This document shows positions 890 through 45,604 of a stretch of DNA of 64,000 nucleotides, in pieces; the stretch's first letter is position 1; each line of letters starts with the position of its first letter. Source of the DNA: Thalia democratica. Lineage: Eukaryota. The position numbers and the translations under genes are program-made. The notes under the pieces were generated by a model that did not search any database, had not been told where the DNA came from, and saw only the letters and a program-made list of their open reading frames with translations. Location of the stretch: positions 58,032,001 through 58,096,000 of the forward strand of contig OZ241832.1 in NCBI GenBank assembly GCA_965202585.1, read 5' to 3'.

Positions 890-1059
890 CCTTCTTTGGT
901 CACTGTGACATCATACACCCCTTCGGCCAGCAACCGCCAAAAATCCCCGTCCGCCGCTGACGTGACGTTGTGGGAAATTCCCTTCACCGAAACAACTGCT
1001 CCCTCGATGGGCTGCTTGTCGGTTGATGACGTCACGAAACCGTGCACCCCCTGGTTGAC
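890..1059 (-). CDS. CPD: CPD exon 15 (VNQGVHGFV...GDFWRLLAEGVYDVTVTKEG); the gene continues beyond position 1
   Basis: GD[FY]WRLL..G.Y.VT motif; 170 nt like exon 7; cag / GG|gtgatt. No downstream exon confidently found in 1-889. Confidence 0.93.
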
Positions 1060-4000
1060 CTGTGAAAATAAAATATTTGACCTGTGAAAATAAAACAAAC
1101 TAAATAAATAAAAAACAATTTGAGTGAAAATTAATAGACTGGAAACAAAAAGTGTGGTAAAAATTTGTGACTTTTATTTTTTGAACACTAAAAAAAATTA
1201 AAAATAAATATCTTGGGGGTATTACAATTGATAAACAAATCAAACATCTTAAATGACTAAATAAACAATATCAATGTATTACTAATAATATAATATAACT
1301 GTATTTTTGTTACTTTCTTCTATAACAAAGCATATATAAAAAATATGAATCACTAAAGTAATGTAATATTTGCAATTTATCAAAGTAAAATTATCATAGA
1401 CACTTAAATCAAGTTAGTTTTATATTCAAACATGTAACTTTGAGATCAACTTTATTTAAATATACTTTACGTTAACTTTTATTAACAAAAATATAGACTT
1501 TTTTAAAGTTTTAAATTAATTTATTCTATGAAATTACGATAAAAAAACACAATAAAAATAAATACTTATGAAACGTTTACTGGAAATCTTGATAAAAACC
1601 CTACGAGGCAGCAGATTGCCGAGGGAATCAATAAATTTAATGAGGTATTATTTCAAAATCAATATTTTTTTATTTGGTATTTCATCATATTTTACCTGCG
1701 ATCGATCGGATTTTGTTTGCCGCCGAAGGTTAAGAAGCAAGATAAGTGAGTTATAATAAAAAAAACAAACAGAACAAAACGAAACAACAAACAATCGCTT
1801 TCAGTTTGCAGAGGAAATCCTGTTAGGTCACGTTTGCTTACGTTTGCTTGTTCTATTTTTTGGTCAAAATTAACTAAACTGTTAATTTTATTGCAAATTT
1901 TAAACTTTTAACTGTTTGTTTTTTTGCTTAACATTTAATTTTAATATTTTTATTTTGTACTTTGTTGTTAAAAATTTACTTACTTTTTAAATTTGAATAA
2001 CTATTTAATTAAATTGAATTTAGTTGTCTTATGCATATTTCTAAATTGGTTGATAAAGTAATTTGTAAATTTTAAAAACAAATATTGTATTTATTTTTTT
2101 TTTAGCTTTAAAACTGTTTATCCATTGATCGAGTTTTTAAACAAGGATAGCACTAGATATATTGTTGTTTTTGTTTTAATACAATAATACACAACTAATA
2201 CTATTTATCAAACAAATTCAGTGTTTAAATATTTTTTGTAGTAAGATGTAAATATAAAAACTATCAATGTTGTTAAAAAAATAAACTTTTATTAAAAAAA
2301 AAAATAAACTAAATAAAAATATAAAATTATACTTAACTTAACGTCGTTAATGTTCAAGTTTAAAAATATTTTTCGACTCAAATTAGAAAATCCTACGCGA
2401 AAATAAATTCACGGCATAGTTTAGTAATTCATTACAACAACGTAATAAAATTACTGAGAGGATAAATAGTATAAAGAGCTTATATTATTAGTTCTTGTTA
2501 TGTTTGTTAACTTTTGCTAATTTTAATGTTTAACTTGTTTTCAGTAACAAATTTTTTTTTCTTAGTTTTTTTGAACACTAAAAACAAACAGTATAATTAT
2601 ATACTATATAAAAGGGTGAATAACATTATTTCTTTATACTTTCTTTAGCTAGATAAAGCTTTACTTAATTTGTAAATTTTTAATTAACTAATGTTACAGA
2701 CTTAAGCAATTTTTAAAAGTTTAATTTGAAATAGTTTTATCTGGTAACGAAATTGAAACCCATATACTAAAGTTTTTTTTCTTTTAAGTGTAAACCCAAG
2801 TCCTACACTTAACCTGGGTAAAAAGTTGTGTTCATTTGAACTTTGTATAAAAATATATTAAAAATTCGCTAACTTTAGATATTGATAAGAATTGTTAAGT
2901 TCAAGTTTAAAAACGTGATGTTTGAATCAAACCAGACTCACCTACGCAAAAACTACACTCATGTGATTATTTATTACATTAAATAGTACCAATGCATATA
3001 AATACATGTTTTGTAAAAGTCTTTTACGTATAAAAGCTGTAAAGATGTAAAATTAAATTTTAATACTTTTCAAATTGTCAACAAATCACTCAATAACTGT
3101 GTGTATGACTCTATACTATTTCTTATTCACAACTTGTCATGTTGAAATTTAAATATAATCAGTTAATTTAATGTTAAGTATAGATGTAATTGAGAATAGT
3201 ATACATTTTCTAATTTAAAAATAAAAGTAGATTTTATTTTTGATGAAAGTAAACGTTTATTTTTAATACTGTTATACTTTAAAGTTTTTATAAACAAACT
3301 AAAGATTTTTTCCTAATAAGTAATAAAGACTTATACTTGCTAGATGTACTCCAGTACATTCAAAAAAATTTTTTATCATAAATTACTCTTTTAAGAAGAG
3401 AAAATCAATATCAAATTTAGCTTGAAAAACGTGTTTCAAAAGCAGCTGCTGAGACTTTTGAAAAAACAAAAAACTGAGTTTTGAAAACTACTGACATTTC
3501 TAGTGTATTCAAAACAAACTGGTGAAACTTAAAAGCATCATTTGGTATAGTTGAAGTTTTTATTTTTAACAAAAAAAAAATTAGTTAAAAGTATATGATA
3601 TTTTGTACACAAAGCTTCTCTTTGTCTATTTCAAATGAAGATAGTACTTTAAATAATTTTGTTTTACAAGTTTTACATTTACGTGTTTGCTTTGTTAAAA
3701 AACTTTATTGCTTTTTTTATGTGTCCTCTTTTTACATGGTTTAAGATGTTTAGGGTCGAACGTAGGACAATAAAACTAATAATTAGTATATTTAAAAAGG
3801 TCGCTTTTATAAGGTTGTTGCAACTGATTAAGTGCTTAAAAAAAAATGATAAGCTCGCTTAACTTATTACCCCGAGCATAACAATTAAAATTCTTGATAC
3901 AAGACAAAAGTTTGTTTTTTTATAAATTTAAAAACTTTTTTTGTTTGATATACTTAAAATACTTCAAAATATTGTAAAACTGAAAATTGCTATTGAAAAT

Positions 4001-4076
4001 AATATGCAATTAATTATATACAAGAAGCTCAAAAACCATTAACTTTACTAAATAGCCATATTATATAATCATGTAC

Positions 4077-4219
4077 CTGCTTTATGTATTCAACCAAGGC
4101 CTTCTTGTTATCCGACCAATATTGTGGGAGAGTTTTAGCGTAGGGGAATTTGTAACAACCTAATTCCAGTGTTATTTCGAAACAGTTGGTATTCAGATAA
4201 TTGTAATCTTGCATTGAAC
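4077..4219 (-). CDS. CPD: CPD exon 14 ([25 protein letters not shown]...VEYIKQ)
   Basis: Catalytic Glu motif; 143 nt like the domain-I counterpart exon 6; cag / CAG|gtacat. Confidence 0.95.
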
Positions 4220-4856
4220 CTGGTAATTTGTTAGCAAATATTATTTTTATTGTTTTCTGGTAAAATTTATTGTTTATTTTTTTGGTTCTATTTTACTTAT
4301 TTACATTTCAAAACAGTTGGTTGTAAGATAATTGTAATCCTGGTAACTTATCGTAATTTTTTATTTAGCCGTATAATTAGATACTTTACTATTATTTTTT
4401 ACTGTGATTTTTTTTATATTACTTATAAATTACTACCTGATGTTTTATTGTTTTTTATCTGCATAATAACTATATAATTTTTTTTACAACATGTTAAACA
4501 ACTATACATACTACTGCATTTTTTTTATTTATAATTTTTTTAATACCAACAGATACTTTGCATTTTAATATCATTTTTATCGTTATTTTGTACATATTTA
4601 TACTTATGTCGTATTACTTGATATACATACAATTTAAACTTTTTTTTATCTACCTAAAATTACATCTATTCTCATTATTTTATTGTTACAATAGTTTTTT
4701 TTAAAAATTTATGTTAATTTTTTATACTTTAATACTACCTAATATTTTATTAATACTTTATTTTATTTTTTTCAACTACCTAATATTGTATTTTTTTTTT
4801 TTTTTGTTGTAATTCAAGACATTTTACATTTTATATTAATATTTTTTTTCAACTAC

Positions 4857-4896
4857 CTGATATTGAATACCACTCTGCTCCGTTTGTTATTCCTTC
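4857..4896 (-). CDS. CPD: CPD exon 13, 40-nt microexon (EGITNGAEWYSIS)
   Basis: GITNGA.WY motif; cag / G|gtagtt; phases match neighbours. Confidence 0.92.
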
Positions 4897-5289
4897 CTGT
4901 AAAAATATTAAATAATTGTAATTATAAATACTAAAATAGTTTAATAAATGTGTGGTAATAAGGTTATAATTTATTTATTTCTGAAAAAAAAATTAATATT
5001 TTTAATCATATATATATAATTTTTCAAATAATTTAAAAAAGGTGTAGAGATATGGGTAAAGTTCATTTCTTCCAGAATAAAAAAAAATGTATTAAAACAA
5101 AATAATTAAATTCATGTGTGTTAATATAGTTTATAGTTATTTCTTTTTGAAAAAATACTAACAATGGCAAATGAGTAATACACAAAACACAAACGCATAG
5201 TAATAAGATGTTACACCGTGATAAGTTATACTAAAACATTTTCTTCTTGAAAATACTTTGTCACTGGTCTATGAGTAAATTCTTCTTGA

Positions 5290-5640
5290 TTTTCTGATCT
5301 TTTTCCAGATTTTTAAAAGTACACGTTTTTGGGTCAGTTTTTAAGTTTAAAATTAAGGTTAAGGTTAAAAACTGTGTTAAGTAGTATAACAACATTAAAA
5401 AGATACTGTAAAGCTACTTTAAATGTGTTTTTAAAAAAATAAGTTTTTAATGGTGACAACATTCTTTTATTTATATGATAAATTTTTTGTTTCAAACCAA
5501 AATTTTAATACTTAACATGTGAAAGTTGTTTAAAATTATAGATTTTTCCAGGTTTTTCAGTGGTTTTTCTTCAAAATTCCAGGTTTTTTCAAAATTTCTC
5601 AAATTCAAGGTTTTCCGAGGATTCCAAGTTTTGTGGCAGT
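5290..5640 (+). mobile_element. hAT-like MITE family A, decayed copy in CPD intron 12
   Basis: Collinear with the 16352 element (aagtttaaaattaag, aaaactgtgtt, tggtgaca, ttccaggttttt blocks); TIRs eroded. Confidence 0.6.
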
Positions 5641-7982
5641 ATGATAAATATGAAAAAATTAAGAGAAGCATATGTGGCAATTAATTCCAAAAATCCGTTG
5701 TTCCTCACTCAAAAATTGTAAACAAAAAATTAATTTTAGCATGTAAAAAAAGAATGAAAATTCGAACATAAATTGACAAATAAAAGTCTGATAATAAAAG
5801 TGCCAAATAAAACATTAAGCAGTTTAAAGAAAAACCTTTTAAATGTTTAGCCAAAAATAAACCAAACCGCAACTTAAACACACCTTTATTAGCTGTGTAA
5901 GTACGCTCACGTAAAAAACAAATAAAACTAATACTTTTCCGCATAAAAAGTCGGCACTTGCGTGAAAATTTAAGTTATAAATTAGTAGGTTAGCAAAAAT
6001 TTTACTTGACGATAAAAGTACGTACAAAAATAAATTTCAGAATTCACATATTTTAACTTATTTATTCGAATTTTTCTTTTTAATTTACACCTTTCTGCCA
6101 TTGAAAGTAACTTTTTTCCTCAAACTTATCAAAATCGTTATAAGTTTTATTTTATATTCAAACAATATTATTTGCCAATATAAGTACACAAAAAACATTA
6201 CACACCCCTGCAAGCATTTCTCTTGCAAATACGCAAACAAGACATTACTTTTCACATTTCATTTATACTTTATTAGTTAACGCATTACACCAACGGGTGC
6301 TTTTACTTAGCAGGTTTATATAATCTGCAATAGCAAGCGTACTTATTAGCACATGATTTTTAATGAACCTACGATTTTTTTAATTAATGTCCTTATAAAT
6401 ACACGTTAGAATGAAAAATAAACTTCACCTTTGTGAATTCAAGATTACTAAATTTTACTTGCATAAAATTTTAAGCGTAATTTTGGATGTTTTACAAGGA
6501 CTTACAAGTTAGATTGGAAAGGTAACTTACACGTTTTTTATTCCATGTGGAATAAATGTTTTTGGTGTTTAATTTTTTTTTAATATTATTTTACTATTTT
6601 TAATGGGGTAATTAACGTTTTGAGGTGGAGCTTTCGGACAAGCTTTTGTTTTTTGTAAAACTTTTTTTTATAAGACTAAAGCTTCACAAGATGCGAGATA
6701 ATATAATAAAAGTTAGACTAAATAATAGAAAGAATATTACTTTATGTTTAAATAAGTATTTTAATTAATGAATTTAATTGCCATACTTTTATTAATTGTC
6801 ATTTATTTTTTAAATAGTCATTTCATGAAGAGTTATTTAAAAAAAAATTATAAAACTTTATTTACATATTGCATTAAGATTTTTTTCAAAATGTTAAAAA
6901 AAGTTACATAAAATTATTATCTAACAAAAAGTTAATAAACTTTAAAGCTTAATTAGTTTTTACTTTCTTTTATTTGAAACTTTTTTAATAATAAAAGTTA
7001 AAGTTTATTTTTTGACTATTTTGGTTAACACTCTTATGTTATTATTTTATTTTTAATTAACTTTGAAATGGATATATTGAACAGTCAACTAAAGCAAAAA
7101 GGCAAAAACTCTTCCATACTGTAAATATTAAAAATATTCCATCCATTTAATTAATGAAATTTTCCAATAACTCACAGTAAAATGTTTGTTGTCACTAATT
7201 AATCATTTAATTTAAATATTTCAATTTTTATTAAACTCACAATGAATTTTTTGTTGTTAATTTTAAATCAACAAATATTTTTTTTTAACTAACAGTGAGA
7301 TAATTCAAATTTAATTTTTTATATTTTATTTATTTTGAGTGAAATGCTACTTTAACTAATTTTTATTTCATTCTTTTCTTAACTAAACTCCTAGATTTTA
7401 TTTTTAATTGTTTAAATTACTACTATTTTTATAATAAAAACAACTCACAGTGAAATTTTGATAAGTAGCTAATTAATTTTTATTTTATTTATTTATTTTA
7501 ACTAACATTGAAATGCTCGTTGTAGCAAATTTTATCAATCTTTATTTAACTAATACTTATTTTATTTTTTAATTAATATTTATTTAATTATTTAGTATTA
7601 TTATTTTCTAATGTTTTAACTCACAGTGAAATGCTCGTTGTAGCAAATTTTATTAATTTTTATTTATTTTATTTTTTGACTCACAGTGAAATGCTCGTTG
7701 TAGCAAACTTTATTAATTTTTATTAAACTAATATTTATTTTATTTTTAATTAATATTTATTTAATTATTTATTATTATTATTTTCTAATATTTTAACTCA
7801 CACTGTAGCAATTTTATTAATTTTTATCTATTTTTATTAATTTTTATTTATTTAACTATTTATTATTATTATTTTCTAATGTTTTAACTAACAGTGAAAT
7901 GCTCGTTGTAGCAAAATGGTTATTCATTATTTTAATTTTTTGATAATTTTTAATTTTTATTTATTATTTTTATTTAACTAAC

Positions 7983-8147
7983 AGTGAAATGCTCGTTGTA
8001 GCACGGGTTTCCTTTCCACATGGTGGCGTGGTTCACCGAGTACTCACGTGACAAATGCTTGAAAGTGACGTCATCAGCGCACACTTGCGACCCCTTGCGG
8101 CGGTGCCTGTCGAGCGGGGAGTACTCGTCGTACGGGTAGTTGGCCAC
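7983..8147 (-). CDS. CPD: CPD exon 12 (VANYPYD...ADDVTFKHLSREYSVNHATMWKGNPCYNEHFT)
   Basis: VANYPYD, DDxxF and H..M..G.PC motifs; cag / ACT|gttagt; 165 nt, phase 0 to 0. Confidence 0.95.
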
Positions 8148-8599
8148 CTGTTGCCATGGCGATGAAAAAATAAGTTTTTTCGTTTGAAGTATTTAGTTAA
8201 ATATTATAAGTGTCTTTTTTTTTGGGGAAATATTTCTTTTATAAATAATTTTAGTTTTTCTAACCTTTTGGTTTACATTTCTCGATTATAAAATGTTTTT
8301 AGTTTGAAGTTTGATTTTTTTTATTATTGACTAACTAAATTGTTACTAACAGTTGTTGTTACAGTTTAAGTTTTATTCTTTTTTTACTTAAAATGTTAAA
8401 TATTTTTTTTACTGAAATTAAAATTTGTGGTCATTTAGATGAACCACAATTTTGTTGAAAATCATAAGACTAATATACATCAATAAAATTTTGTGTTTTG
8501 AAACTTTTTGTTAGTCATTACAAATAAACTAAAACAAGACTTGTATTACGTATTTAATGAACAAAAACTTACTTGGAACAAGCGATCAAAACAAGATAT

Positions 8600-9480
8600 A
8601 AGCAAAAGTAATTTTTTGTAAATAGTTTATTCTAAGAACTGTTTTTAAAATGTAAGCTTAATTCTTATAATAAAAAGCAAGATAACAAGAGTTCAATTAC
8701 TTATATTGGCACTCAATACAAACTTACTTATAAGAAAAAACTATTATTCTTTAAGAACCAATAAAACATTCTAACAAATACTTAAATGCCATTTAATTAA
8801 CTTATATATATTATTATAGGGGTAGTAAGAGTATTGAAACAAGTTAATATTACATACAAATATAACTGAATACAAACTAACGAGACTTACGTAGAAGAAA
8901 AACTAACATTCCAATAAGTAAAAAAAAGTTATTAAATTAACTTAAATGATAGGAGTGTTGCAGTAAACTAATATTACATATTTGATAATAACAAAGGCTT
9001 TTAACAAGGAAAACAACGCAGATCAGCATTCAGCACAAACTAATTTGAAATAAACAACCAAAACAAAATGTTAGCAAAATGTTTTTTATAAATAGTTTAT
9101 TCTAAGAACTGTTTTAAAAATTTAAGCTTAATTTTTATAATAAAAAGCAAGATAACAAGAGTTCAATTACTTATATTGGCACTCAATACAAACTTACTTG
9201 TAAGAAAAAACTATTATTTTTTAAAAACCAATAAAACATTCTAACAAATACTTAAAAGCTATTTGACCAACTCAAATGATAGGAGTATTGAAGTAAACTA
9301 ATATTACATATTTAATTGCAAACAAATAGTTGATTTTTTGTAACTTTTGTATACTTAACAAAAAACTAACTAACAAGAATTTAATTAACATGCTAATAGC
9401 TGTAAAAAGTTATTAAAATAACTTAAATGATAGGAGTGTTGAAGTAAACTAATATTACTTATATAACTAAATACAAACTA
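8600..9480 (+). repeat. Nested tandem duplications filling CPD intron 11
   Basis: ~180-bp block at ~8615-8790 repeated at ~9085-9260; aaatgataggagt.ttgaagtaaactaatattac at ~8944, 9274 and 9424. Confidence 0.88.
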
Positions 9481-9482
9481 AC

Positions 9483-9663
9483 GAGGCTTCCGCCGTGCAA
9501 ATTAGCACTCAACACGAACGGGTACTGGTGCAACCAACCGATGACGTTCCTGGTTTCCGCCTGCATCGCTCCCTTCTGCAGGTTGTACTGGTCGGGAAAG
9601 TTCCTGTTCAGGTCGAAGTTCAACCCGTTGCTCCTGCCGCGACTCGAGGACCTGTCTCCCTCG
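9483..9663 (-). CDS. CPD: CPD exon 11 ([12 protein letters not shown]...[10 protein letters not shown]...[12 protein letters not shown])
   Basis: Hand translation gives DLNRNFP and [12 protein letters not shown]; cag / CTC|gttagt; 181 nt. Confidence 0.95.
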
Positions 9664-10479
9664 CTGCGTTGTTTTAATATTTTATTTTAAATAAGGTTCT
9701 TTTTTACTTGTTTATGTAAATTTATTTAATTCAAAATACTTCTACTTTGATGCTTTAAGTTTTTTTTTTGTTATATGAGTGTTTTTCGTGGTACAATACA
9801 CTAGCAAATCTGGTATACTAAAGACGTTGTTTTTTTTTGTGTGTAAAATTTTTGATTCCAACAGTCTGTTTTTGGTCTTTCATTTTAAATGATTTCTTAT
9901 AAAAAAGAAGAATACTAGTTAAAATGTTTACTGTTTGTTCAGGGTTTCATGACAATTCACATTCCTAAAAAATCTTTAAGAAACCACAACTTTAAAAGTT
10001 ACATATTTTCAAAAGAATCAAAAATGCTCATGCAGGTCTAAGTAATAAGATTATGATTTTAATATGCTAAAGTTAATAAACATTTTTTAATAAAGATAAT
10101 AAACAACAACCTAAAAATATTAAATTTCTTTCCCAAACAGTCATGCACCCATTCTTAGCTACTGTATTTTTTTATTGAAAAAAAAACGTAACCGTCAGGG
10201 TTTGTTACAAGTAATGTTCTATTTAATTGATAATCATATTTCTTAATCTCTTAAATATTTTTTTTAACTTTTGCAAACAAATTACAACATTCAAACCAAG
10301 CTCTTTATAGATTTTTCAATGTTAAGTAATGTTTTTTTATATCTCAACTTACATCTTATCTATTAAAAAATGTCGACAAATTCATTGCATTGTTTTATTG
10401 AGTAAAAATATTTTTAAAAATACATAAGTCTTTAAGACTTTTTAGCACAAGTAAGTAAATAGAAAACTTAAGAAGGTAA

Positions 10480-10626
10480 AAAGATATTACAGTAAAGCAT
10501 ATACATACAAGTTTTAAAGCTATATAAACGTAAATTACAATAATAAAAGCTATGAAAACGTTTGAAGAAAAATATAATTTATATAGCTATAAAACTTGTA
10601 TGTATATGCTTTTTTGTAATATCTTT
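10480..10626. other. Long inverted repeat (hairpin) in CPD intron 10
   Basis: Arms 10480-10528 and 10578-10626 are reverse complements with about 3 differences. Confidence 0.88.
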
Positions 10627-10819
10627 ATACCACCTTAATATTTCAATTCATCTACTTATGCATATAAATCTTGTGTGTTTAATTTTCACAAAATTCTTAT
10701 CTTAACAGTATTTATTCCTTATTTTTTATAAAACTCATTATGACGTATCCATTATCTAGCTTTTGTACATGTTAGTATTATATTTCATGGCTTACTTCAA
10801 CACAGCAGTAGCTGATAAA

Positions 10820-11160
10820 TGTGTTTTGAAAAATATTTTCTACTTAATAAAACAACGCAATGAATTTTTCGACATTTTTTATAAAAATTTGTACCCCGTG
10901 AAAGATATTTAAAACTTTTTATTTATTTGTTTATTTATTTATATTTATAACATTTTGTTAAGTTATTTTTCGAACAAAAAAACAAAGTTAAGTAATATTT
11001 AAATAATAAGTGTGTTTTGAAAAATACATTCCACCTAATAAAACAACGCAGTGAAATTTTTTATTAAGTAGATTTTTATTTAATAATATAAATTTAATAT
11101 TTACATTTTTTATTAAAATTTGTACCCCGAAAAAATCATTTAACATTTTATCTAATTTTA
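10820..11160 (+). repeat. ~190-bp tandem duplication in CPD intron 10
   Basis: tgtgttttgaaaaata...taataaaacaacgca...aaatttgtacccc repeated at ~10820-10910 and ~11011-11130. Confidence 0.85.
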
Positions 11161-11182
11161 TCAACGAAAATAAAAAACAAAC

Positions 11183-11369
11183 ATCGCGACTTCGTAGCCG
11201 TCGGGATTCATGCTGGGCATCAGGTGGATGCGGGTCGCGTCCACCACCCTCTTAACGTCGTCTATGACGTCATAGTTGACCAGCAGGTACTCCATCAGGT
11301 TCAGGATCAGCTCCCTGCCGACCACCTCGTTGCCATGCATGTTACCCACGTACTTGAACTCCGGCTCGC
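11183..11369 (-). CDS. CPD: CPD exon 10 ([19 protein letters not shown]...[17 protein letters not shown])
   Basis: Canonical [18 protein letters not shown]; cag / AT|gtttgt; 187 nt. Confidence 0.96.
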
Positions 11370-12346: not shown

Positions 12347-12538
12347 CCGGTTCGTGCGTTCCCGGGTTGTCTGATATTTCCATCACCCACTGCTCTCTAC
12401 CGCCCACTGCGGACTTGCCCACCGAGTACATCCTGGTCAGATGGGGGTATTCCCCGCTCAACCGCTTCATGAATGACGTCATCGCGACGTAGTCGTGGTG
12501 ACGGAACTCCGAGGGTTCGATCGGTTCTTGCACATGTT
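12347..12538 (-). CDS. CPD: CPD exon 9, start of domain II (HVQEPIEPSEFRHHDY...YSVGKS...MEISDNPGTHEPG)
   Basis: F.HH.Y, YS.GKS and EISDNPG.HEPG motifs; cag / G|gtacgt; 192 nt. Confidence 0.95.
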
Positions 12539-15500: not shown

Positions 15501-16351
15501 AGGATATAAGGACTTATTAATAAACATTACTCGTCATTGTCAATTACATTAATAAACGTCTCTATATAATTGATTGGTGGTTTAAATCTATTACTTTCTG
15601 CTAGGTACCAGAATAAATTGTATCAATGCTTTGAAAATGTTTAATAATAAACATAATCATTTTTTATAAAATATTTGTCCATTATTATTATAACAACTGT
15701 TTAAAAAATACTATCCATATAGTAATAAAGTTATGAAACACTTAATTATATATTTAGAACTGTGTTACTTAAATCAGCTAAAATGAGAAAATACTTAAAC
15801 TTATTAAGTTAATTTTGCTTACTTACTTACTTAAATGAGTTAATTATGTTTTTACATTTATAAAATTATGGTAAACATAAGACTATAATTATAAATTATC
15901 TAATTTTCGTGTATTAAAACTAAGCTGCACATGAAATATTAAAACTACTCTCAAAATTATATGTGCATTTTTTTCAAAATTAGTTAAGTTTCTAATAATG
16001 AGCTAGTAACACTTTCTATATTAACCAGTAACGTTCGACTCAATACTTCGCTTGTGTTTTCTTTTGTTACGATGACGTTTTACTGTGATGTCATAATCAT
16101 AATACAGTAATTACGTAATACAGTGATTAAAATGCTATAAATGCTATTTTGTAAGCTTTATATTTTTTGTTTTGTTAAAGTTTAATTTATTTACTTATAA
16201 GTTTTTTTTTTGATACTTTTCATCAAAATACATTAACGTAAAAAGATTTAAAACCAACCATTTGCCAAAGCTTTATTTTTTTTCGGATTGATGAATTTTT
16301 GTAAATAGTATAAAATTCTCACTTAACTCACGTTAATAAAAAAAAATACTT

Positions 16352-16769
16352 CAGGGTTGCCAAATGTTTTTGGCAAATTTTCTCCAGGTTTTCAAAATTT
16401 CTTTCAAGTTTTTTAAACCATACGTTTTTTGGACTATTTTAAGTTTAAAATTAAGTTTTAGGTAGAAAACTGTGTTTAGTATAACGACATAAAAAAAGAT
16501 ATATTAAAGTTTCTATAGATATGTTTTTAAATAAAAAAACTTGATGGTGACAAAAAAAATAACTATACAATAGATTATTTGTGTCAAATCGAAGTTTTAC
16601 TACTTAACATACAAAAGTTGTTTTAAACTCCAGGTTTTTCTAGGTTTTCTGGTTATATTTGATCAAAATTCCAAGATTTTTAGTGATTTTTGTACAAAAT
16701 TCCAGGTTTTTATTCAAACATTCTCAATTTCAAGGTTTTTCCATGATTCAAGATTATTTGGCAACCCTG
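16352..16769 (+). mobile_element. hAT (Blackjack-like) MITE, family A, in CPD intron 8
   Basis: TIRs CAGGGTTGCCA / TGGCAACCCTG; internal sequence shared with the 5290-5640, 45455-45604 and 48463-48841 copies; no clean 8-bp TSD seen. Confidence 0.75.
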
Positions 16770-17473
16770 TTACTTAAACTAGTTATTAAATCGTTGATAT
16801 ATTTTTGTCAGGGTTTGCCAAAAAATTTTTCATTATCACACTCTTGGCAAAAAGATTTTTTTAAAACAATCAACCCCTTTTTATTAAATGTTTGATATAC
16901 TAGTCAATTACCGATTTTTTCTTTTTCTCTCTTCTACTAGCCACCTGCCCCTAGAGACCCACTTTAAAAACCCTTGGTTAATGAAATGATAACATTAATT
17001 TTGTCTATGAAGATGATATATCGAAAAAGACGTGAGTAAAAATGTGTAATTTAAACTTAAATATCAGTCCTAAGCATTTTTTCTTAATTTCACTTAAGCA
17101 AAGTATACTTTTTCTTTTAATCATACCTAAAGTTGAATATTAAAAACCAAGTTAAAATTATTGATACACCAAGCTAAAGAGTAAGACTTTATCACTGCCC
17201 TAATTTTAAAAGTCACCCACCCCCCTTATTATTCATTGTCCACTTTATGGGCGATTTTAGTAAAATGGAGGCAATACCGAAGTCTTTAGTTTAAACGATT
17301 AATGTATTAAACAAAATGTACATTGTGATTTTTGTATACACCAATCCTCACAAAATTTAATGCTCTTAAATTTTACATTTATATAACTCAACTTAAAATA
17401 AGCTAATTCTAGCATAACTTACATTATAGAAAAACACATTAGTTTTCGGTTACAATTTAATAAAAACACGAAC

Positions 17474-17547
17474 CTTGTTGGAGCTGAACATTGTCAATCA
17501 CATAGTTGTCGTCGGGAACGTAAATGTTTCTTTTTACCGTCTTGTAT
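17474..17547 (-). CDS. CPD: CPD exon 8 (YKTVKRNIYVPDDNYVIDNVQLQQ)
   Basis: The open cag...G|gttcgt block (phase 2 to 1) I found that bridges exons 7 and 9 in frame; 74 nt; fits the GY...V...F/V-x-L end of the transthyretin-like fold. Confidence 0.82.
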
Positions 17548-20196
17548 CTGCAATTGTATTTATTCAAAAACTTTCAAAAGTACTTGATTAAATTTTATTA
17601 TTTAATAACAATATATTTAAGAATAATTTAAAAATAAAAAATATATATTAGTTTTTATCATAGATTGCGTTTACTTCGTTTTAAATTCTCTAAGGCATGT
17701 TTCAAGATAAATTAAAAGTAGAATAAAAGTTTAAGCATGTGTGAGTTCAAACAATTGTTTTTTTTTTAATTTTTTATATAAAGTTATGCAATTTAAAACA
17801 AAAAAATCAAAGTTGTAATCACGATATAAAGTTTACCATTGAAGTTAACCCGAATGTATATATATAATCATTATACAACATCAATTTTGCTTATAGTCAA
17901 AAAGCTTGAATAAATATGAAGCTAGTTTATATTTACATACAAACTTGACTGATGAACAAAATTAATAAAATAATAAACTGAAATAAATACTTCATCTATA
18001 TGACCTCACAAGGAAAAATATTTCGAACTATTGAAAAATCAAAATTAATGTCGATATTAGTAAATAATTTATCTAAATAAAAACAATTTTGTGCTTGGGG
18101 AAAATAAAAACTGAAATTTTAAAGAGAAAATATTTTTTTTAAATGCACATGTAAGCCAGGTAGGTATTTATAAGATTTCATGCAAAATTATACTGACATT
18201 TATGAGCCTCATTAATAATTAATAGTTGCGTCATAATGCGAATGTCGTCCGCTTTTTTAAAATCACGGATCCGTACATAATGCGATTTGCGATTTACAAG
18301 GTGGAACTTCTGTGTGCAAAAGTACATAATATTATTTTATTATCAAACCCATACATTCTATTAGAAGTTATGAAGTTTACTTGTTAAATGTGATTTGTGA
18401 TTTTTAAGCTTGGTTCAGAGAAAAAACGACTTTTGTGTATATGCTTAATTATAAAACATTTTGTGTTTATGTTTTCTTATAAGTTTGGCTTTTTTTCGGT
18501 CAGATGTTTCTGCTTATAACACGCGTCGTAATAAAGATTTTTGTTTACTTAATGTTAGACTTCATACATTGTTATAGCATTATTTTTCAAAATGTAAAAT
18601 TTACTTTTTTAATGATTATTATTTTATACGTATAAAACAGTTTGAGTTTAGTTTTATATGTTTTTAAACCCAGGCTAACTGTATATTGTTTTGTTTATTA
18701 TAAATAATTTTATAAAAATTATTTGATATTTTCTTTCAATAACCCTGTATTGATGTGAAATTTAATATTTGGTAAAATTAAAAACTATTCAATTTTTATC
18801 AAATAATCTGCAATATCAACATTTATTTATTTGCTTGCCAAATATCTTGTATTTAATACAATTAAAGTAATACACACACATGATTTTCAAAAACTCACCA
18901 AGTAGGTTATCATCATTTTTGATTATTAGGCGGTAATATACTTATACAAATGTAACAAAAATATACAAGACAACTTTAACTTATGTAGATTAAAAAAATC
19001 TAAAGTTTTATTTACAACACTACTTATTATAACTTAAGTGTACAACCATTAAATAGTATATTTATATAACTGCTTTAAATAACTATCATGTTGTAAAATT
19101 AATCAAAAAATAATTACTAAACAGTAAATCATTATTTAAACAATGACTATAATCTTTTAGTTTGTTTTAATACAAAACTTAACAAAAATTTTACAATTCT
19201 ACTTAATCAAAACAAAAACAAGTATAAACTTTTAAGTTATTATTTCGTTTAAAAACAATTTTGTACCAGAACTCAAATTTGAGAATACTTTCAATTTATT
19301 TCAAGTCGCAATCTAAAGAGTCTTAAACTAAAATCGTTTGCAACTTTAGCACTTAAGCAAATTGAAAAATCAATTTTTTCCAACTTAAACCAGCTAAAAG
19401 CCCTGCGTAAAATACGCTTTAAAATTTAATTAATACGTCATACCTTATTTCATGTTTTTTTCTCATAAATACTTCTCCCAATATGTGACAATGCGTACTC
19501 TTGTTAAATTTTTCATGCAAAGCACATGTAATTACTTGTAATTTTAAAAACAAATACAAAGTTACGGAATATTACAACTATGTACGCTTTCTTACAACTC
19601 AAAACGAACTTTACCTTACTTTAGAATTGAAAACAAATGATGGTAGAATATGTTTTAGGTACTTACATGCTTAAACTTTGTTTGGGTTTTAATAAACACG
19701 ATATTGATGACTGTATTTTAATAAGCTAGTGATTATTTTCAGTTCGAATAAGCAATAAAACCATGTTTTGCTCATAAATACAACATTATATTTCACTTTT
19801 GGTAATTAAGTTTATTTAAAAGGAAACTTACTTCTGAGTTAACACAATCGATTTATTTTTGACAAGCTAATTTATTATAAAGTTCTTCAACTAACTGCTC
19901 AACAAACATGCGTATAATTTTCAATTAAGTTTTGTGCATGCCATACCATAATCTTGTTAATGAAATAAAAAACTAAAATGTATTTGATCAATTTTCTCAT
20001 GAGAAACAACAAAACATTTCATTTTAAAGTAACGTAATCGGGCTATACTTTTATTTATTTAGCAAAAAAAGACACAGAACTTCAATGATCAAACTGCCTA
20101 AATAGTATATAAAGTATAAGTTTTATTCTATTAATTCAATAAATTTAAATAAAAATTAATTAAAAGCCCATAAAATCATAAAATATATACACGAAC

Positions 20197-20366
20197 CCCT
20201 TCTTTTTGTATGTGACGTCATAGTCCTTCCCTCCCACCAGCATGCGGAAGAAGTTGCCAGTGACGTCAGTGGTGACGTTGTACTCGATACCGCCCACCTG
20301 CACTGTGACGTCATCAAGCGGGTTGTTGTTGGCGTCGACGACCTGACCCCTGACTCCCCTGTTCGC
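20197..20366 (-). CDS. CPD: CPD exon 7, transthyretin-like subdomain (ANRGVRGQVVD...GNFFRMLVGG.DYDVTYKKKG)
   Basis: Typical GVxGxV...GxFxRxL...YxVT pattern; cag / GG|gttcgt; 170 nt. Confidence 0.93.
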
Positions 20367-21612
20367 CTGTTTAAATTGATAAAAAAAATAATAAAAAATA
20401 ATATAAAAACAAATAAATAAAATCACAATCCCCCTGTTCGCCTGTGAGTTGAGAATTAATATAATAAATAAAAGTATTGCACAAGATTACCAAAAGAGAA
20501 CATTGTATGTTATTCACAAAAATTTTAGAGTATTAGTTTCAAAATAGCTGATTGTTGCTTCTAAATGTTTTAAATATTATTATGATTGAAACAAAATTGA
20601 ACAAGTCTTGTGAGGCTCCTCTTACTTGACTCAATTTATTTTGAAAACCTCGCCTGTGGTTGGATTAATTTATTAATAAAAAGTATTGCACGTTTTAATT
20701 TCTCGAAACAGATGCAAAGATCTCAACTTCTAGAGGAGAAATAAAATATTATTTATTATGCTTTCAAGACTTTTTTTTCTATTTGAATAAGATTGTTTAT
20801 ATAAGCACTGACGAGGTCTTTGACCGAAACTGAGTTTGCATTGAAAAGTCTTGAAAGAATAATAAAAAAGTATCAATAAAATTAATATCTTAATAAAAAT
20901 AAAACAAAATAAACAAATCACAAGCCTGTGAGTTTAATTTGAAAGATAGCATAAAAGTTTGGTCTAAGCATAAGCTGAGATTATTAAAAGAAAACATTGT
21001 ATGGTTAAACACAAAAAATAGCAAGTTTGGCATCAGAAGTAAACGTTGGAAATTGTTTGATAAAAATCTATCCAGCTGAACAAATCTGATTTAAGATTCA
21101 ATTCATTTTATATTTTAAACTGTAGTTGGGTGTTAGTTTCAAAATAGCTGATTGTTGCTTTCAAACGTTGTAAATAGCATCATGATTAAAACAAAAATTG
21201 AACAAATATTATGAGGATCCTCTTACATAATAAGCTAATAGTTTTAAAATTGGTGGCTGTCGTCTTAAAATTTTATTGTAACTGCAAACACTGTTATATT
21301 TAAATAGATTTGCGATAAAAAAAATATAGAATAATCTTATAAAACACCTGAACTTCATTCATTTTTTATAATTATATAAGTATAATATTATAATTTAAGT
21401 ATTTCAAGTAAAACCAAATAATAAAACCAACCAATTGGACGAATTTTATTAAGCTCATATTATTTTTAACTTTTTTTCACTAAACTTGTTGATTTAAATA
21501 AAAACAAACAATAAAACCAACCAATTGGACAAATCTTATTAGGCTCATAATATTTTCTAATTGTTTTTCACTTAACTTGTTTAATTAAATAAAACCAAAT
21601 AATGAAACCAAC

Positions 21613-21755
21613 CAATTGGACGAATTTTATGAGGCTCATCTTGTTTCTGTTCCACTCGTTTTCCAGTTCGCTCGCGAAGGGGTACTTGCAGCAGGTGAGC
21701 TCCAAAGTGATTTCCATGCATTCGCCGTGCAGGTAGTTGAAATCTTGCATTCCGC
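21613..21755 (-). CDS. CPD: CPD exon 6 (GMQDFNYLHGECMEITLELTCCKYP...IKFVQL)
   Basis: MQD.NY and catalytic Glu in ITLEL.CCKYP; tag / TTG|gttggt; 143 nt. Confidence 0.95.
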
Positions 21756-22414
21756 CTAAGTGAGCGATTTGGATTTTATTTGTAAAAAAATTATCAAGAA
21801 AAACTTTGAAAGCATGCTTATAGGTCGTTCTGATGTTGCTGCGTCAACAATTTTTTTTTAAGTTTCTCATTTGATTTTTTTTAATTATACCCTTATCCCT
21901 AACCCACATTTCTCCATGCAAGCAGTTAAAGTCTTGCAATCCACTTGAATAAATATTAGTCTTTTATAAAGCAAACTAAATGAGAGACATACTTTGTAAT
22001 TTATTGGGTACTAGTTTTTTAATAAAAATGAGTTTTATTTTCGCACTTCACCCCCCACATATATGTAAGTTTTTCAAAATTTTTAAAACTAAATGAAAAA
22101 TTTGATCAGTGGGATTTTATTTTTTTTAATAGTATTTTTACTTGAACAAATGTTTATTTGATATACTTGAACCTACATAATAAAATGATAAACCATTAAC
22201 TATACCATTATCAAATTTAAAAAAAAGTTGAGAATAAATTTAACTCAAAAAAATTTTTTGAAAGTTAGTAATTATTGAAAATAAAATTGATACCAAAATT
22301 TAATAAATTAAACAAACCAGGAACATTGTACCATTCTGCACCCATTAATGTTATCATTGCCATATTTATAATTGAAACTATTAATTAAAATATTTTTATA
22401 AACAGTAAACAAAC

Positions 22415-22570
22415 CAGGCACGTTGTACCATTCTGCACCATTGGTGATGCCACCATCAAACTGGTCTTCATCGCACTTCCTGTTGTTCAGGTGCATGTCA
22501 CGGTGATTGTTCGAATACGTCGAAGCCATCTCGATGAAGAAATCGTTGTCCGGTGCTATGGAGGCCACTC
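22415..22570 (-). CDS. CPD: CPD exon 5 (VASIAPDNDFFIEMASTYSNNH...GITNGAEWYNVP)
   Basis: GITNGA.WY motif; cag / G|gtttgt; 156 nt, phase 1 to 1. Confidence 0.95.
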
Positions 22571-23134
22571 CTGTTATAATTGTCTTTTATTGAAAAGATG
22601 TCTGTTGTAAGATAATTTGGATCTGTGAATAAACAGTCATCTCCTGTGGTACATTAAGCTTTTTGTGATCAGTGATCTATGATAATTAATTGATATCTAC
22701 ATTGTACATGTATAAGTTTTAGCCCAGCTTTAATATACATAAAACTTGGACCTTCCCATATGTAAATACGTAAATAAAATACTTACCATTTTTTATCTTG
22801 TTTAGTAAAAACTTTTTGAAAACAACTACATTGTATATGTTAAACTTTTAAGCAAGCTGTATCATGATATGTAAAATAAGCTTGGGCTGCCCATACGTAC
22901 ATTAATATCAAACTACTGTGAGTTTAGTTTAGATTATTTTTTATACATCTGCATTGTATATGTAAAAGTAAGTGTTGACCAATTTGTATAATAAAATATA
23001 TAAAATAAAGTTTAACCCAATGTGATTGAGTAATCAATTTACTAACCATATTGTAACATAAAGTAACATGACAAAACCACATAAATACGAACAATTAAAA
23101 CTTTCATCGAATATAAAGTATTCAAGTTACTAAC

Positions 23135-23229
23135 CATACTGTTTGTGGTCGTATTTGGTCAATTTTCTCGAATCAAAAGGATAAGAAGCAACTTCGGAGC
23201 CGGCGTGAAAATTCGCAGATAAAATGAAC
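23135..23229 (-). CDS. CPD: CPD exon 4 (FILSANFHAGSEVASYPFDSRKLTKYDHKQY)
   Basis: Not in the ORF track; hand translation gives SANFHAG (third zinc ligand) and YPFD; cag / G|gttagt; 95 nt, phases match both neighbours. Confidence 0.93.
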
Positions 23230-24306
23230 CTGTACACAAAAGTAATATAATGGTAATGTTTATCATGTTATACAATAAAGTTTATATATACAATGTAAAG
23301 ATTATATGTAGCTTTTAATTGGACATAATAAAAGTGAAAATCAATTTTGCAACACATACTTAAATAAATATTTAAACATCAAAAAGGAGTCTCTACCTAA
23401 TACTATAAAGCTGCTATATTTTGCAACTGACAGCAATTCTAATATTATTTCTAAACTGTCTGTCATCAACAACAAACAAACTTAAAGTTTTTTTTTTGTT
23501 TTTTAGTAAGTATTTAGCTGTACCTTATTTTTGATTTAATGTATAAAATTTATCCCCACAAAAACTATAAATTAGTTACTTAGTTAAACATCAGACAGTT
23601 ATTTTGAGTTTGAACATTTCTGTCTAAAATATCAAACGCCTAAACTAATAAACCATAACTATCAACTTCCTCCTAATGATTTAATGCAAAATTTTTAAAT
23701 ACTAAAAATAATAAATAGAAATTTCACAACTTTCATTAATATTAAAAACGCTTCACTTAAGTATTGATTTAAAATAAAAAATCATCAGTGACTCTATATA
23801 ACTTTTTCGAAACATCAGTTTTAAAACTTGTTGTTTTGTCAACTAAATTCTCAAACTTATCACTCAATACTTATACAAGTTAAGTTGACATCAACATAAT
23901 CGAATTTGTTATTGGTGATCCGATTTTGTTTAAAAACAATAAACAACTATAAATTAAATAACCAAACTTATCAATAAATAAAAATAAATAAACATAATAA
24001 ATCAAACTTTTTATTAAATGATCTAGCTATATTTAAAAAGCCAATTATTTTGTACTTGTTATATTTCTAAATACCCTAACTAAACTTATTATTAGAGTTC
24101 TAGTCCAGCATAAGTTTTGTTTCCTTCTCATACAGCATAATATACAACAATACAGTAATGTAACATCTATAGCAATATCATTTATTTTCATAAACAATCA
24201 AACTTGTTACTAGTGATCCAGTCCATCATCAAATATGTCTCTTTCTTGTACAATACAACAACAAAATAACATAATATCTTGTAATAATATAGATAAACAA
24301 ACAAAC

Positions 24307-24519
24307 TTGTTACTGGTGATCCAGTCCATCATCAGCTTCGTCTCCTTCTCGTACTCCCTTCCCCTCCTCTCCTCCTCCGTGTCGAACTGATCCGGAAAGT
24401 TCCGGTTGAGGTCCACCTCGTTCGCGTTCTTCCTCCCCACGTACCCCGCCAGCGACTCGCACCTGCCTTCCTTCGACGCCTCGAAACCGTCGGGGTTCAT
24501 CGACGGCAGCAGGAACAGT
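24307..24519 (-). CDS. CPD: CPD exon 3 (LFLLPSMNPDGFE...[10 protein letters not shown]...WITSNK)
   Basis: PSMNPDG and DLNRNFP motifs; cag / AA|gtttgt; 213 nt, phase 2 to 2. Confidence 0.95.
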
Positions 24520-25666
24520 CTGAGTGTTGAAAAATAAATATTTTGAAAGTTTAGTTGCAGCACACATATGTTTTTAATATTTGTTGGTTGTGGGAACATT
24601 GAAAATCACTTTAACTAAAATTCAGGAAAAGATTTAAATACTTTTGTTAAAAAGTTAAAATAGTTTTGTTTTTTGATTGTTTGAACCTAGACAATAATTT
24701 AAGACAGATTCGTTGAGGATAGCAGGAATAGTCAGGGTGTTGAAAAATATTTTGAAATTTTAGTTGCAGTACACATAAGTTTTTTATATTTGTTGGTTGT
24801 GGGAACATTGAAAACCCCCTAAATTAAAACAATATAGTACTTTTGCATGAAATTTTCTAGTTTTTTTTTTTGACTGTATTAATCTAAACAATGATTTTAG
24901 ATTGATCGTTGAGAGTAGCAGGAATAGTATTGGTGTTTGGAAAAACTATTCATTTTAAAACGTTTTTTCAAGTACACTACTTTCTGGTATGTACAAGATA
25001 GATAAGTTATATTCGTTCTGCAAAATGTTCAAGAAATAAAAGTTTGTTTTCAAGGTGTTATGTATAAGTAATTTTGAAAAATTGTACACAGTATTCTAAC
25101 TTAAAAAACTGGAATAAATTAGTTATGTAAAACCAAGTTAGAAAGGAAAAGAAAAATTATTTTTTATAGCATAATTATTTGTTATAAGATGCTAAAACTT
25201 GTTCTTTCCTTATATCTATTTTGCTGCAATTATAATTTTAACAATAAACTAAATGTTACAGTTTAGCCTACTAGAACATGCAAGAAAATGTTTCTTTAGA
25301 ATATCTATGAAACATAGTTTTAAAATGAATATAACTATCATTTATACAAAACTGCTTTAAAATAATGACCTTGTTTTAAAAACTTGACAACACCAGAAAA
25401 AACTCAGCTTTTTTTGTGGTTAAAAACAAAAACATTTTTAGTACCAATTTTTTGATAACTGATCAAACCACCTTGTGTTTTTCAGTATATTCATGGCGTC
25501 AAGCAATTAACAGAAAGCAATAAATGCTTACTCTGCATATTTAATAATCCTAACCATTGTTTGACTTATTCAAACTTTAGATAATTTTAGATACTTACTT
25601 TGTTTTATATGACACAAATAATGCAACTAAACCTTAAGATTACATAAAAAAAACCTATAATGTTAC

Positions 25667-45454: not shown

Positions 45455-45604
45455 TATATTCAATTTTTTTATACTATACAACATTGTTTCTTACCTTAAA
45501 CTTAATTTTAAACTAAAAATCTACCAACAAAAGTGAACTTTTAAAAACCTTGAAGAAACTTAAAAAACCTGGAGAAAATTGGCCAAAAATACTTGGCAAC
45601 CCTG
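45455..45604 (-). mobile_element. hAT-like MITE family A, truncated end in ELL intron 2
   Basis: ...aaaacctggagaaaattggccaaaaatacttggcaaccctg is the reverse complement of the start of the 16352 element. Confidence 0.6.

Follow-up and report, generated by a model that had tools for sequence, protein, structure and literature searches.

Exon-edge echoes in the introns of a tunicate carboxypeptidase D gene: mirage-type structures that probably arose by tandem duplication across exon-intron borders

The CPD gene and its echoed borders

We rebuilt a carboxypeptidase D (CPD) gene on the minus strand of the window, the 64-kb stretch of DNA analysed here, as 15 exons that are separated exclusively by GT-AG introns and form a single open frame of 766 codons. 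The encoded protein carries two Peptidase_M14 domains with CarboxypepD_reg modules in Pfam. RNA contigs from run X3 contain the exact junctions E2-E3, E3-E4, E4-E5, E5-E6, E6-E7, and E7-E8, and placed the E7 donor 6 nt upstream of our initial sequence-based pick.

890..26917 (-): CPD gene, exons 1-15 in the window (open frame over GT-AG junctions; RNA contig junctions E2-E8; Pfam)
26917-26771, 25890-25667, 24519-24307, 23229-23135, 22570-22415 (-): CPD exons E1-E5
21755-21613, 20366-20197, 17547-17474, 12538-12347, 11369-11183 (-): CPD exons E6-E10
9663-9483, 8147-7983, 4896-4857, 4219-4077, 1059-890 (-): CPD exons E11-E15

We searched for copies of the exon edges using border queries of 45 nt (30 exon and 15 intron nt) aligned to the adjoining 1 kb of intron, and a border was counted as echoed if it beat every one of its controls (about 120 windows of 1 kb per border, both strands). 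By this measure 12 of the 29 CPD borders were echoed: E2d, E3a, E3d, E5d, E6d, E7a, E10a, E11d, E12d, E13d, E14a, and E15a (d, donor; a, acceptor). Queries of 75 nt added E4d, E6a, and E9d, giving 15 of 29 borders (9 donor and 6 acceptor), such that 5′ and 3′ borders are both affected. A preliminary description of this DNA had named 12 echoed borders, 11 of which were recovered; the exon 9 acceptor remained below threshold with the 45-nt query (score 12 versus a control maximum of 14), while the E2, E4, and E9 donors and the E6 acceptor are new relative to that list.

The same description placed the copies in the adjacent intron and in the orientation of the exon, and the controls agree, with 1/29 matches on the reverse strand of the adjoining intron and 0/29 in the intron on the opposite side of the exon. 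GC-rich exon-interior 45-mers used as queries gave 0/46 matches, and no border query exceeded its own adjacent-intron score elsewhere in the 64-kb window on either strand. Mobile elements or introners were considered and rejected, no border having a better match at an unrelated locus in the window. Exon-edge echoes are thereby confirmed in the CPD introns, where they are exceptionally crowded and cluster clearly at the ends of exons, affecting about half of the borders.

25470..25501 (-): E2 donor echo, 165 nt from the start of intron 2, matching at 27/32 nt (30 exon nt + GT)
24520..24956 (-): E3 acceptor array, 2 additional copies of a ~200-nt unit with 23-24 exon nt; AG lost in both (TG, AT)
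24068..24306 (-): E3 donor array, 2 head-to-tail copies (103- and 118-nt units), 48 exon nt, GT intact in both; also in runs X4 and X5
23029..23054 (-): E4 donor echo, borderline, 8 exon nt + GTTAGT + 12 nt, 23/26 identical
22299..22346 (-): E5 donor echo, 97-nt tandem unit with 28 exon nt + intact donor, 43/47 identical; X1 contig identical over 21694-22536
21910..21967 (-): E6 acceptor echo, borderline, 35 exon nt, 41/58 identical
20593..21612 (-): E6 donor copies, whole region
21373-21644 (-): E6 donor tandem array, three 91-nt units including the real border
21194-21226, 20593-20625 (-): E6 donor, two further, older exon-end copies
20431..20471 (-): E7 acceptor decoy, 25 intron nt + AG + 11 exon nt, 33/36 identical
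12088..12146 (-): E9 donor echo, borderline, 35-39 exon nt, 43/55 identical
11493..11771 (-): E10 acceptor echoes; the near copy (6 exon nt, AG kept) matches at 29/31 nt, the far copy has 34 exon nt and TG in place of AG
8666..9482 (-): E11 donor array, within a ~470-nt higher-order duplication
9133-9201, 8860-8891 (29/32 identical), 8666-8723 (-): copies of E11 exon end + donor
7035..7982 (-): E12 donor array, 8 copies, GT kept in 7/8; TRF period 178
4640..4791 (-): E13 donor echoes, short, 8-12 exon nt + GTAG...; 1 significant copy (29/33 identical), 2 weaker by eye
4305..4363 (-): E14 acceptor echo, 43-46 exon nt, 11-nt deletion
1060..1081 (-): E15 acceptor, 22-nt perfect-type tandem duplication, acceptor + 5 exon nt; its use would shift the frame
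45788..46288 (+): ELL, two additional copies of the final ~55 coding nt with stop codon and 3′ flank, at spacings of 182 and 233 nt

Five of the eight E12 copies begin at a common 21-nt exon breakpoint (four at 20-21/21 identity and one internally deleted), and three E12 decoys read GTGAGT while the real E12 donor is GTTAGT. At the E14 acceptor echo an AG is apparent by eye, and the gapped alignment reads AA at the splice position. Echoes had also been proposed at two stop codons: the ELL copies were recovered, whereas the echo at the PDZ-gene stop codon was judged by eye. At the ELL stop codon, a border without a splice site, the pattern is that of the splice borders.

Anatomy of the copies and splice-site use

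The copies are often arranged head-to-tail, in units of 22-330 nt that combine an exon end, its splice site, and the adjoining edge of the intron (TRF periods 91, 178, and others; find-repeats spacings; BLAST), which is the organization expected from the border-spanning local tandem duplication already proposed for this gene. Each border has 1-8 copies with an exon part of 5-56 nt, close to the one to about ten copies and roughly 5-50 nt first reported; the steady decay with distance from the exon that accompanied this report is reduced to a loose trend. Differences between exon and echo are dominated by GC>AT over AT>GC changes (97 versus 15), a drift to A/T that lowers the G+C content of the exon-derived part from 45.5% to 33.8%. 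The copies contain 7 stop codons and 50 nonsynonymous versus 45 synonymous changes, and are therefore not retained as coding sequence.

The exon-side breakpoint is common within an array, at 21 nt in at least five E12 copies and at 48 nt in both E3 donor copies, which argues for one founding event per border followed by amplification of the array and against the repeated recopying of the exon initially envisaged. Higher-order duplications with near-identical units are found in the E11 and E12 arrays, and most other arrays consist of 1-2 decayed copies. In E7a, the near E10a copy, E12 unit 0, E5d, and E13d, a junction patch of 26-47 nt is highly alike (88-100%), while the remainder of the supposed unit has a similarity of 0.62-0.71 where chance gives 0.61. 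The restriction of likeness to this patch is a counterpoint to a single tandem duplication that decayed uniformly. At E3a and E6d the intron part is better preserved than the exon part.

GT is retained in 19/21 donor decoys, and AG is missing from acceptor decoys about half the time. If used, decoys with GT or AG retained would lead to a stop or a frameshift in 19/20 cases; the exception is the E7 acceptor decoy, whose use would insert 75 in-frame nt free of stops, unlike the distal copies checked in the preliminary description, which were said to shift the frame or hit a stop. The authentic donor is the most upstream of its run at all donor arrays. RNA contigs demonstrate use of the exon-contiguous site at E3a, E3d, E5d, E6d, and E7a (real E7 acceptor at 20366), as anticipated in the preliminary description, and donor decoys are silent in these contigs at E3, E5, and E6. 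Only canonical junctions were present in the X3 contigs, which cover E2-E8 and drop rare isoforms.

Altogether, echo arrays cover ~4.5 kb of the 23.7 kb of CPD intron. They make up 31-61% of the length of introns 2, 3, 5, 6, 11, and 12, and intron 6 reads as repeats of the exon 6 end and intron head, with the final copy ~230 nt from exon 7. Since the arrays amount to 19% of intron length and are absent from introns 7 and 8 and from the interior of intron 14, the claim that these introns are built from recopied exon ends was overstated.

Origin of the echoes

Border echoes were in excess of what 45-mers taken from within these introns would predict (12 observed versus 2.2 expected), and 6 of 9 BLAST-defined local repeat clusters span a border, with 2 more holding decayed exon ends. 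BLAST-level local repeats are absent from introns 1, 4, 7, 8, 9, 13, and 14 and from distal intron 12, except for a repeat at the end of intron 9 that spans the E10 acceptor border. In the short introns 4, 5, and 13, 5/6 borders are echoed and no interior event was found.

We consider it likely that the echoes are mirage-type structures, named after similar arrays in amphioxus, produced by small germ-line tandem duplications that span exon-intron borders. Duplications of ~22-330 nt would by chance include a border, and each unit would then hold 5-56 exon nt together with the splice signal and the neighbouring intron edge. The spliceosome would keep to the site contiguous with the rest of the exon, leaving the extra copy intronic and the mRNA unchanged, so that a border-spanning duplication would be tolerated; an equivalent duplication lying entirely within an exon would be purged by selection. 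Some founders may have been amplified by unequal exchange or slippage to as many as 8 copies and to the 178- and 470-nt higher-order repeats, while copies would drift to the A/T-rich composition of the intron. We infer the tandem duplication mechanism itself from the arrangement of the units, and the decoys are probably silent and neutral, with the first site presumably winning at donors and the exon-contiguous site at acceptors. By analogy with human F7, donors would be picked by 5′-to-3′ scanning, a choice made easier as the copies lose their exon-like G+C content.

Several other accounts were weighed against this one. Mis-assembly is practically refuted by the present data: X1 DNA contigs, built independently, show 0 differences over the E3 acceptor, E5 donor, and E6 donor arrays, and the E3 donor echoes are also covered by X4 (DNA, ~6% diverged) and X5 (a 2016 marine metagenome). 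The null offered in the preliminary description, that small duplications are equally frequent throughout the introns and are only easier to see at edges, where exon sequence is rich in G+C and selection has frozen one of the copies, is in line with the abundance of very short tandem repeats (period 7-30) all over the introns, with interior or intergenic duplications at 28921, 58912, and in intron 10, and with a within-intron circular permutation of the intron-only signal that revealed no significant pull to borders (p 0.2-0.57). However, simulated 60-100-nt duplications of the same age were detected about equally in interiors and at borders (ratio 0.9-1.7) and the introns listed above lack an interior repeat at BLAST level; given equal detection power and the observed excess, visibility as the sole explanation fails, and we regard it as very improbable. 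As the permutation was not significant, the edge excess rests on event counts and the simulated decay model, in one gene. Our preferred guess for its cause is that mutation is locally biased at coding islands, which are rich in G+C within a genome of 22-25% G+C. It is also conceivable, if doubtful, that in this salp-like genome templated tandem duplication in the germ line has genuine hot spots at the edges of G+C-rich coding islands, be they splice borders or stop codons, with short-tract exchange with the working border keeping the decoys exon-like; recombination, or replication that stalls at exon islands in DNA of 22-25% G+C, are possible causes.

Random duplications could instead have occurred in once very short introns (tens to a few hundred nt) that were later lengthened by insertions, which would suit the repeats that fill intron 6 to within ~230 nt of exon 7, exon-side breakpoints scattered over 5-56 nt and not fixed at the splice site, and thaliacean genomes ranging from 106 to about 900 Mb (PMC13746493). 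The youngest events (E5d, E7a, near E10a, E12d, E15a, and the ELL stop; patch 88-100%) nevertheless also lie at edges of introns that were presumably long already, and the short introns have echoed borders with no interior event, making this history unlikely. A more serious contender is anchored concerted evolution, which we hold to be possible but lean against: copies would swap short tracts with the working border while selection bars transfer into the exon, so that the exon acts as master and the copies stay exon-like. Junction patches are much more alike than the unit remainder in 4-6 arrays, four E12 copies are nearly or fully identical to the exon, and third codon positions carry an excess of differences, also when G/C sites alone are compared (odds ratio 1.9, p 0.009). 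Against this, most copies are clearly decayed in G+C and carry stops, the intron part is the better kept at E3a and E6d, the patches are short for homologous exchange, and the third-position excess is expected regardless, because the exon lineage changes only synonymously and third positions hold most G/C. Selection of decoys for a function, be it as U1 sites against premature polyadenylation in A/T-rich introns, as splicing enhancers, or as alternative isoforms, would account for the GT kept in most donor decoys, the three GTGAGT decoys at E12, and the open, in-frame E7 acceptor decoy. It is hard to reconcile with exon-derived stretches conserved beyond the needs of a U1 site, the loss of AG in about half of the acceptor decoys, canonical junctions in the RNA, decay to A/T, and an ELL echo lacking a splice site, and appears highly improbable. 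Taken together, the first interpretation of these echoes is partly supported.

Relation to known systems and significance

Structures of this kind have already been described, and CPD is a further case in a tunicate. In amphioxus, 'mirages' are minisatellite-like tandem duplications of exon-intron boundaries found in Adh3, the globins BflGb6/9, troponin C, and PGBD5, by a mechanism that the authors call unclear (PMC3087553, PMC3902484, both citing Canestro et al. 2002). Both systems have tandem units (tens to about 160 nt in amphioxus) over a 5′ or 3′ exon border, keep GT/AG in many but not all units, leave normal splicing undisturbed (for CPD, RNA for E2-E8), and show signs of array turnover. 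The CPD echoes match the mirage criteria in that the unit spans the border and the terminal unit is the working border (12-15 borders), in tandem on the same strand of the adjoining intron, some echoes being alignable only at the junction patch; traits of the amphioxus class include length instability or polymorphism between haplotypes or individuals and concerted evolution within arrays. The host differs in being a tunicate lineage whose genome is far richer in A/T, a single gene has echoes at about half of its borders compared to one or two per gene in amphioxus, and the CPD copies are mostly old and decayed whereas those of amphioxus are near-identical. Unlike the amphioxus reports, the present analysis quantifies the excess over intron interiors.

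In human F7, the first unit of a 37-bp VNTR in intron 7 spans the exon 7 donor, and the most upstream donor is used even when downstream sites fit U1 better, silent pseudo-donors following it, an experimental precedent for 5′-to-3′ scanning (PMC1557585), whereas the preliminary description had proposed that decoys are ignored through exon definition. A comparable preference for the upstream site over better U1 matches may hold at the E12 GTGAGT decoys. F7 has one array of identical units in one gene with splice choice tested by mutagenesis, while CPD has many arrays, including acceptor-side echoes, known here from sequence and RNA contigs. Intron gain or sliding through tandem duplication of a proto-splice site (Rogers model; Drosophila PMC2891723, potato PMC4974935) likewise yields duplicate splice signals with the stretch between them spliced out, but creates a new intron or a new position inside coding sequence, whereas in CPD positions are unchanged and existing introns lengthen. 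Intron gain was rejected for CPD because carboxypeptidase domains 1 and 2 have a parallel exon structure and the frame is continuous with exon-contiguous splice sites, leaving no new or shifted intron.

CPD is an ordinary housekeeping gene with echoes at half of its borders, while mirages have so far been anecdotal, recorded gene by gene in amphioxus with their origin stated as unclear. A genome of this type suits genome-wide statistics on how exon-edge duplications arise and on their share in intron growth, and raises the further question of how the spliceosome ignores dozens of intact, sometimes stronger-looking decoys in A/T-rich introns. Gene predictors are prone to error at intact decoys, such as the in-frame E7 acceptor. 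If coding-island edges were indeed duplication hot spots, mirage formation would measurably drive the lengthening of introns and the expansion of genomes among thaliaceans, and would provide a mechanism for the unexplained mirages of amphioxus.

Echoed exon borders in the carboxypeptidase D gene

The G+C content is 20-29% in most 2-kb bins of the window, with short G+C-rich islands interspersed, and the islands on the minus strand form a carboxypeptidase D-like gene.

890-26917, minus strand: carboxypeptidase D gene (CPD), exons E1-E15

The 15 exons were placed by frame continuity and GT-AG sites and give a single open frame. Single exons match both Peptidase_M14 and CarboxypepD_reg of Pfam, each of them two times, which is the tandem-module layout of carboxypeptidase D. 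We took sequencing run X3, which has no RNA label, as RNA from its exon-only depth. Its contigs contain the junctions 25667|24519, 24307|23229, 23135|22570, 22415|21755 and 21613|20366, and their exon 7-exon 8 junction places the E7 donor at 20197, 6 nt off the initial model. In nine of the 15 real donors (890-26917, minus strand) the +3 base of the intron is T (GTTTGT, GTTAGT, GTTGGT, GTTCGT) compared to the usual A or G, pointing to an unusual genomic consensus for 5′ splice sites.

To each of 29 borders we assigned a 45-nt query (30 nt of exon and 15 nt of intron), aligned it to the adjacent 1 kb of intron, and compared its score with those of about 120 control windows of 1 kb, drawn from the two strands of the window. 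The score exceeded that of every control at twelve borders, namely the donors of E2, E3, E5, E6, E11, E12 and E13 and the acceptors of E3, E7, E10, E14 and E15; queries of 75 nt add the E4 and E9 donors and the E6 acceptor. The preliminary description had listed 12 borders whose exon end and splice signal are repeated in the adjacent intron (echoes), and 11 of these were upheld against the controls, the exon 9 acceptor not being significant in the 45-nt test. The reverse strand of the adjacent intron gave a significant match for 1 of the 29 queries and the intron across the exon for none; no significant echo was found for 46 G+C-rich 45-mers from exon interiors. The same arrays were recovered independently by TRF, find_repeats and BLAST.

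The echoes are not assembly artefacts, a possibility that the preliminary description had raised, since contigs of DNA run X1 match 24640-25845, 21350-21634 and 21694-22536 with 0 differences, and the E3 donor echoes are covered by both X4 (DNA, about 6% diverged) and X5 (a 2016 marine metagenome). Because of its presence in X4 and X5, at least the E3 donor array is older than the split of those lineages. Two side observations concern the same region.

20100-25950, X4 (labelled as another organism): about 93-94% match to the introns, with many small gaps
20100-25950, X1: heterozygous sites at about half depth

Together, these provide two diverged lineages and within-sample polymorphism usable for dating. 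A search of metagenome contigs for orthologous loci brought up relatives of 55% identity at most, which do not help with dating.

Anatomy and decay of the copies

Besides the splice dinucleotide, a copy contains an exon part of 5-56 nt and an intron part of about 15-25 nt or longer; there are 1-8 copies per border, spaced 22-330 nt from start to start. Within intron 6 the exon 6 end is copied four times, and the copy farthest along lies about 230 nt from exon 7. The exon-side breakpoint is common to the copies of an array, lying at 21 nt in no fewer than five copies of E12, at 48 nt in the two copies of the E3 donor and at 23-24 nt in the two copies of the E3 acceptor. This favours a single founding duplication at each border that was later amplified, in keeping with the higher-order repeats at E12 (178 nt) and E11 (about 470 nt).

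In gapped alignments GT is retained in 19 of 21 donor copies, the GT seen by eye in the E9 copy and two E11 copies hinging on gap placement. Three E12 decoys carry GTGAGT compared to GTTAGT at the real donor. Among the acceptor decoys, the two E3 copies and one E10 copy have lost the AG, which E7, the near E10 copy and E15 retain; in the E14 copy an AG is visible by eye, yet the alignment has AA at the splice position. The claim that distal copies would shift the frame or meet a stop holds for 19 of 20 intact decoys and fails for the E7 acceptor decoy, which adds 25 codons in frame without a stop.

20367-20441, minus strand: open frame of 75 nt between the intact E7 decoy acceptor and the real acceptor; the RNA contigs use the real site

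Gene prediction programs might place an insertion of 25 residues at this point. Recursive splicing was considered and rejected, as AG|GT occurs only in the E13 echoes and that intron is just 637 nt long.

Across 701 aligned exon-derived positions, G/C-to-A/T differences number 97 compared to 15 in the opposite direction, and the G+C content, 45.5% in the exon, is down to 33.8% in the copies. Differences are concentrated at third codon positions (74, compared to 31 and 30), an excess that persists among G/C sites alone (odds ratio 1.9, p = 0.009) and that is largely accounted for by third positions carrying most of the G/C and by an exon lineage restricted to synonymous change. The copies do not evolve as protein-coding sequence, as they contain 7 stop codons and their codon changes are nonsynonymous in 50 cases and synonymous in 45, and there is no evidence that they are kept as such. 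With one lineage frozen, the exon part reaches 78.5% identity and the remainder 68%, values that give no overall support to uniform selective conservation of the exon-like patch, although this may apply in four to six echoes where only a patch is alike.

Such a patch, 26-47 nt at the junction and 88-100% identical, is found at the E7 acceptor, the near E10 acceptor copy, E12 (real unit against first copy) and the E5 and E13 donors; the remainder of the unit in these five has an identity of 0.62-0.71 compared to 0.61 ± 0.04 for unrelated intron pieces. At the E3 acceptor and E6 donor the likeness extends over the whole unit. The patch-only cases fit short-tract exchange with the working border, and they equally fit duplication of a small unit followed by growth of an A/T-rich spacer, of which the 22-nt duplication at E15 would be a nascent example.

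The exon/intron G+C differential is held, reportedly by Amit et al. 2012, to aid exon recognition; it would help explain how A/T-decayed copies are ignored.

Edge preference or visibility

The echoes could reflect duplications that are genome-wide and merely easier to see at G+C-rich exons. Intron interiors do duplicate: for 7-8% of intron-only 45-mers, a local copy in one direction is significant. Summing the intron-specific rates, 2.2 echoed borders would be expected compared to the 12 observed. BLAST detected nine local repeat clusters in the 23.7 kb of CPD intron, of which six span a border, two hold decayed exon ends and one (intron 10) does neither; no cluster was found in introns 1, 4, 7, 8, 13 and 14 or distal intron 12, and intron 9 has only the one at the E10 acceptor border. 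Under uniform placement only about 11-20% of events would be expected to touch a border. Visibility was addressed by simulating 60-100-nt tandem duplications with A/T-biased substitution and indels scaled to the X1-X4 gap-to-substitution ratio. Simulated interior duplications were detected as well as border ones up to about 18% per-copy divergence, and the border/interior detection ratio was 0.9-1.7 throughout. When the intron-only signal was circularly permuted inside each intron, no significant pull towards borders emerged (p = 0.2-0.57), in part because arrays take up a good part of introns 2, 6 and 11; the trend with distance from the border thus mainly reflects how the introns differ from one another and is no proof. 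The edge excess thus has good support when events are counted, though it comes from a single gene and depends in part on a model.

The echo asserted at the stop codon of a second gene, ELL, was confirmed, the last 55 coding nt and the stop codon being recopied twice, which indicates that the effect tracks the edges of constrained G+C-rich sequence, not splice sites as such. The PDZ gene, for which a similar echo had been claimed, contains a young intron-only duplication near a border.

58912-59358, minus strand, PDZ-gene intron: 112-nt block duplicated 335 nt apart, 98% identical, ending about 45 nt upstream of the last exon's acceptor, with a TACTAAC-like motif and without exon sequence

Intron content and known systems

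Echo arrays occupy about 4.5 kb of the 23.7 kb of CPD intron (19%), so that describing the introns as "built from recopied exon ends" was too strong. Their share is about 56% in intron 2, 49% in intron 5, 61% in intron 11 and 31% in intron 12, while introns 7 and 8 and the intron 14 interior contain none. The window holds too few dispersed repeats to bear on a transposon origin of the long intron interiors. Other repeats observed are as follows.

5300-5640, 16350-16763, 45393-45606, 48554-48842, both orientations: four copies of a dispersed element of about 300-400 nt, 72-81% identity, which looks like a small non-autonomous mobile element
20688-20883, CPD intron 6: very high-copy repeat at which many contigs break; contig word depth about 1-2.7 x 10^5 in three DNA runs compared to about 100 around it
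30894-32027, plus strand: long single open frame for an Asn/Leu/Ser-rich protein with a hydrophobic C-terminus; its internal 33-nt and 117-nt coding repeats are tandem repeats within coding sequence, not edge echoes
57327-57529: tandem-repeat cluster with units of about 70-115 nt, 77-94% identity, in a stretch of 38-47% G+C

Minisatellite-like tandem duplications of exon-intron boundaries are known as "mirages" in amphioxus Adh3, globins, troponin C and PGBD5; they affect either border, often keep AG/GT and leave splicing undisturbed, and the authors describe their origin as unclear (PMC3087553, PMC3902484). In human F7, a 37-bp VNTR begins at the exon 7 donor, and its pseudo-donors are functional yet silent because 5′-to-3′ scanning takes the most upstream site, even against better U1 matches (PMC1557585). 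New introns arising from tandem duplication are also established (PMC2891723, PMC4974935); in contrast to such intron gain, CPD intron positions are unchanged. Our literature search found no description of mirages in tunicates. The CPD echoes are genuine, dense and backed by statistics, and they belong to a class of structure that is known but obscure; their interest lies in the preference for exon edges.
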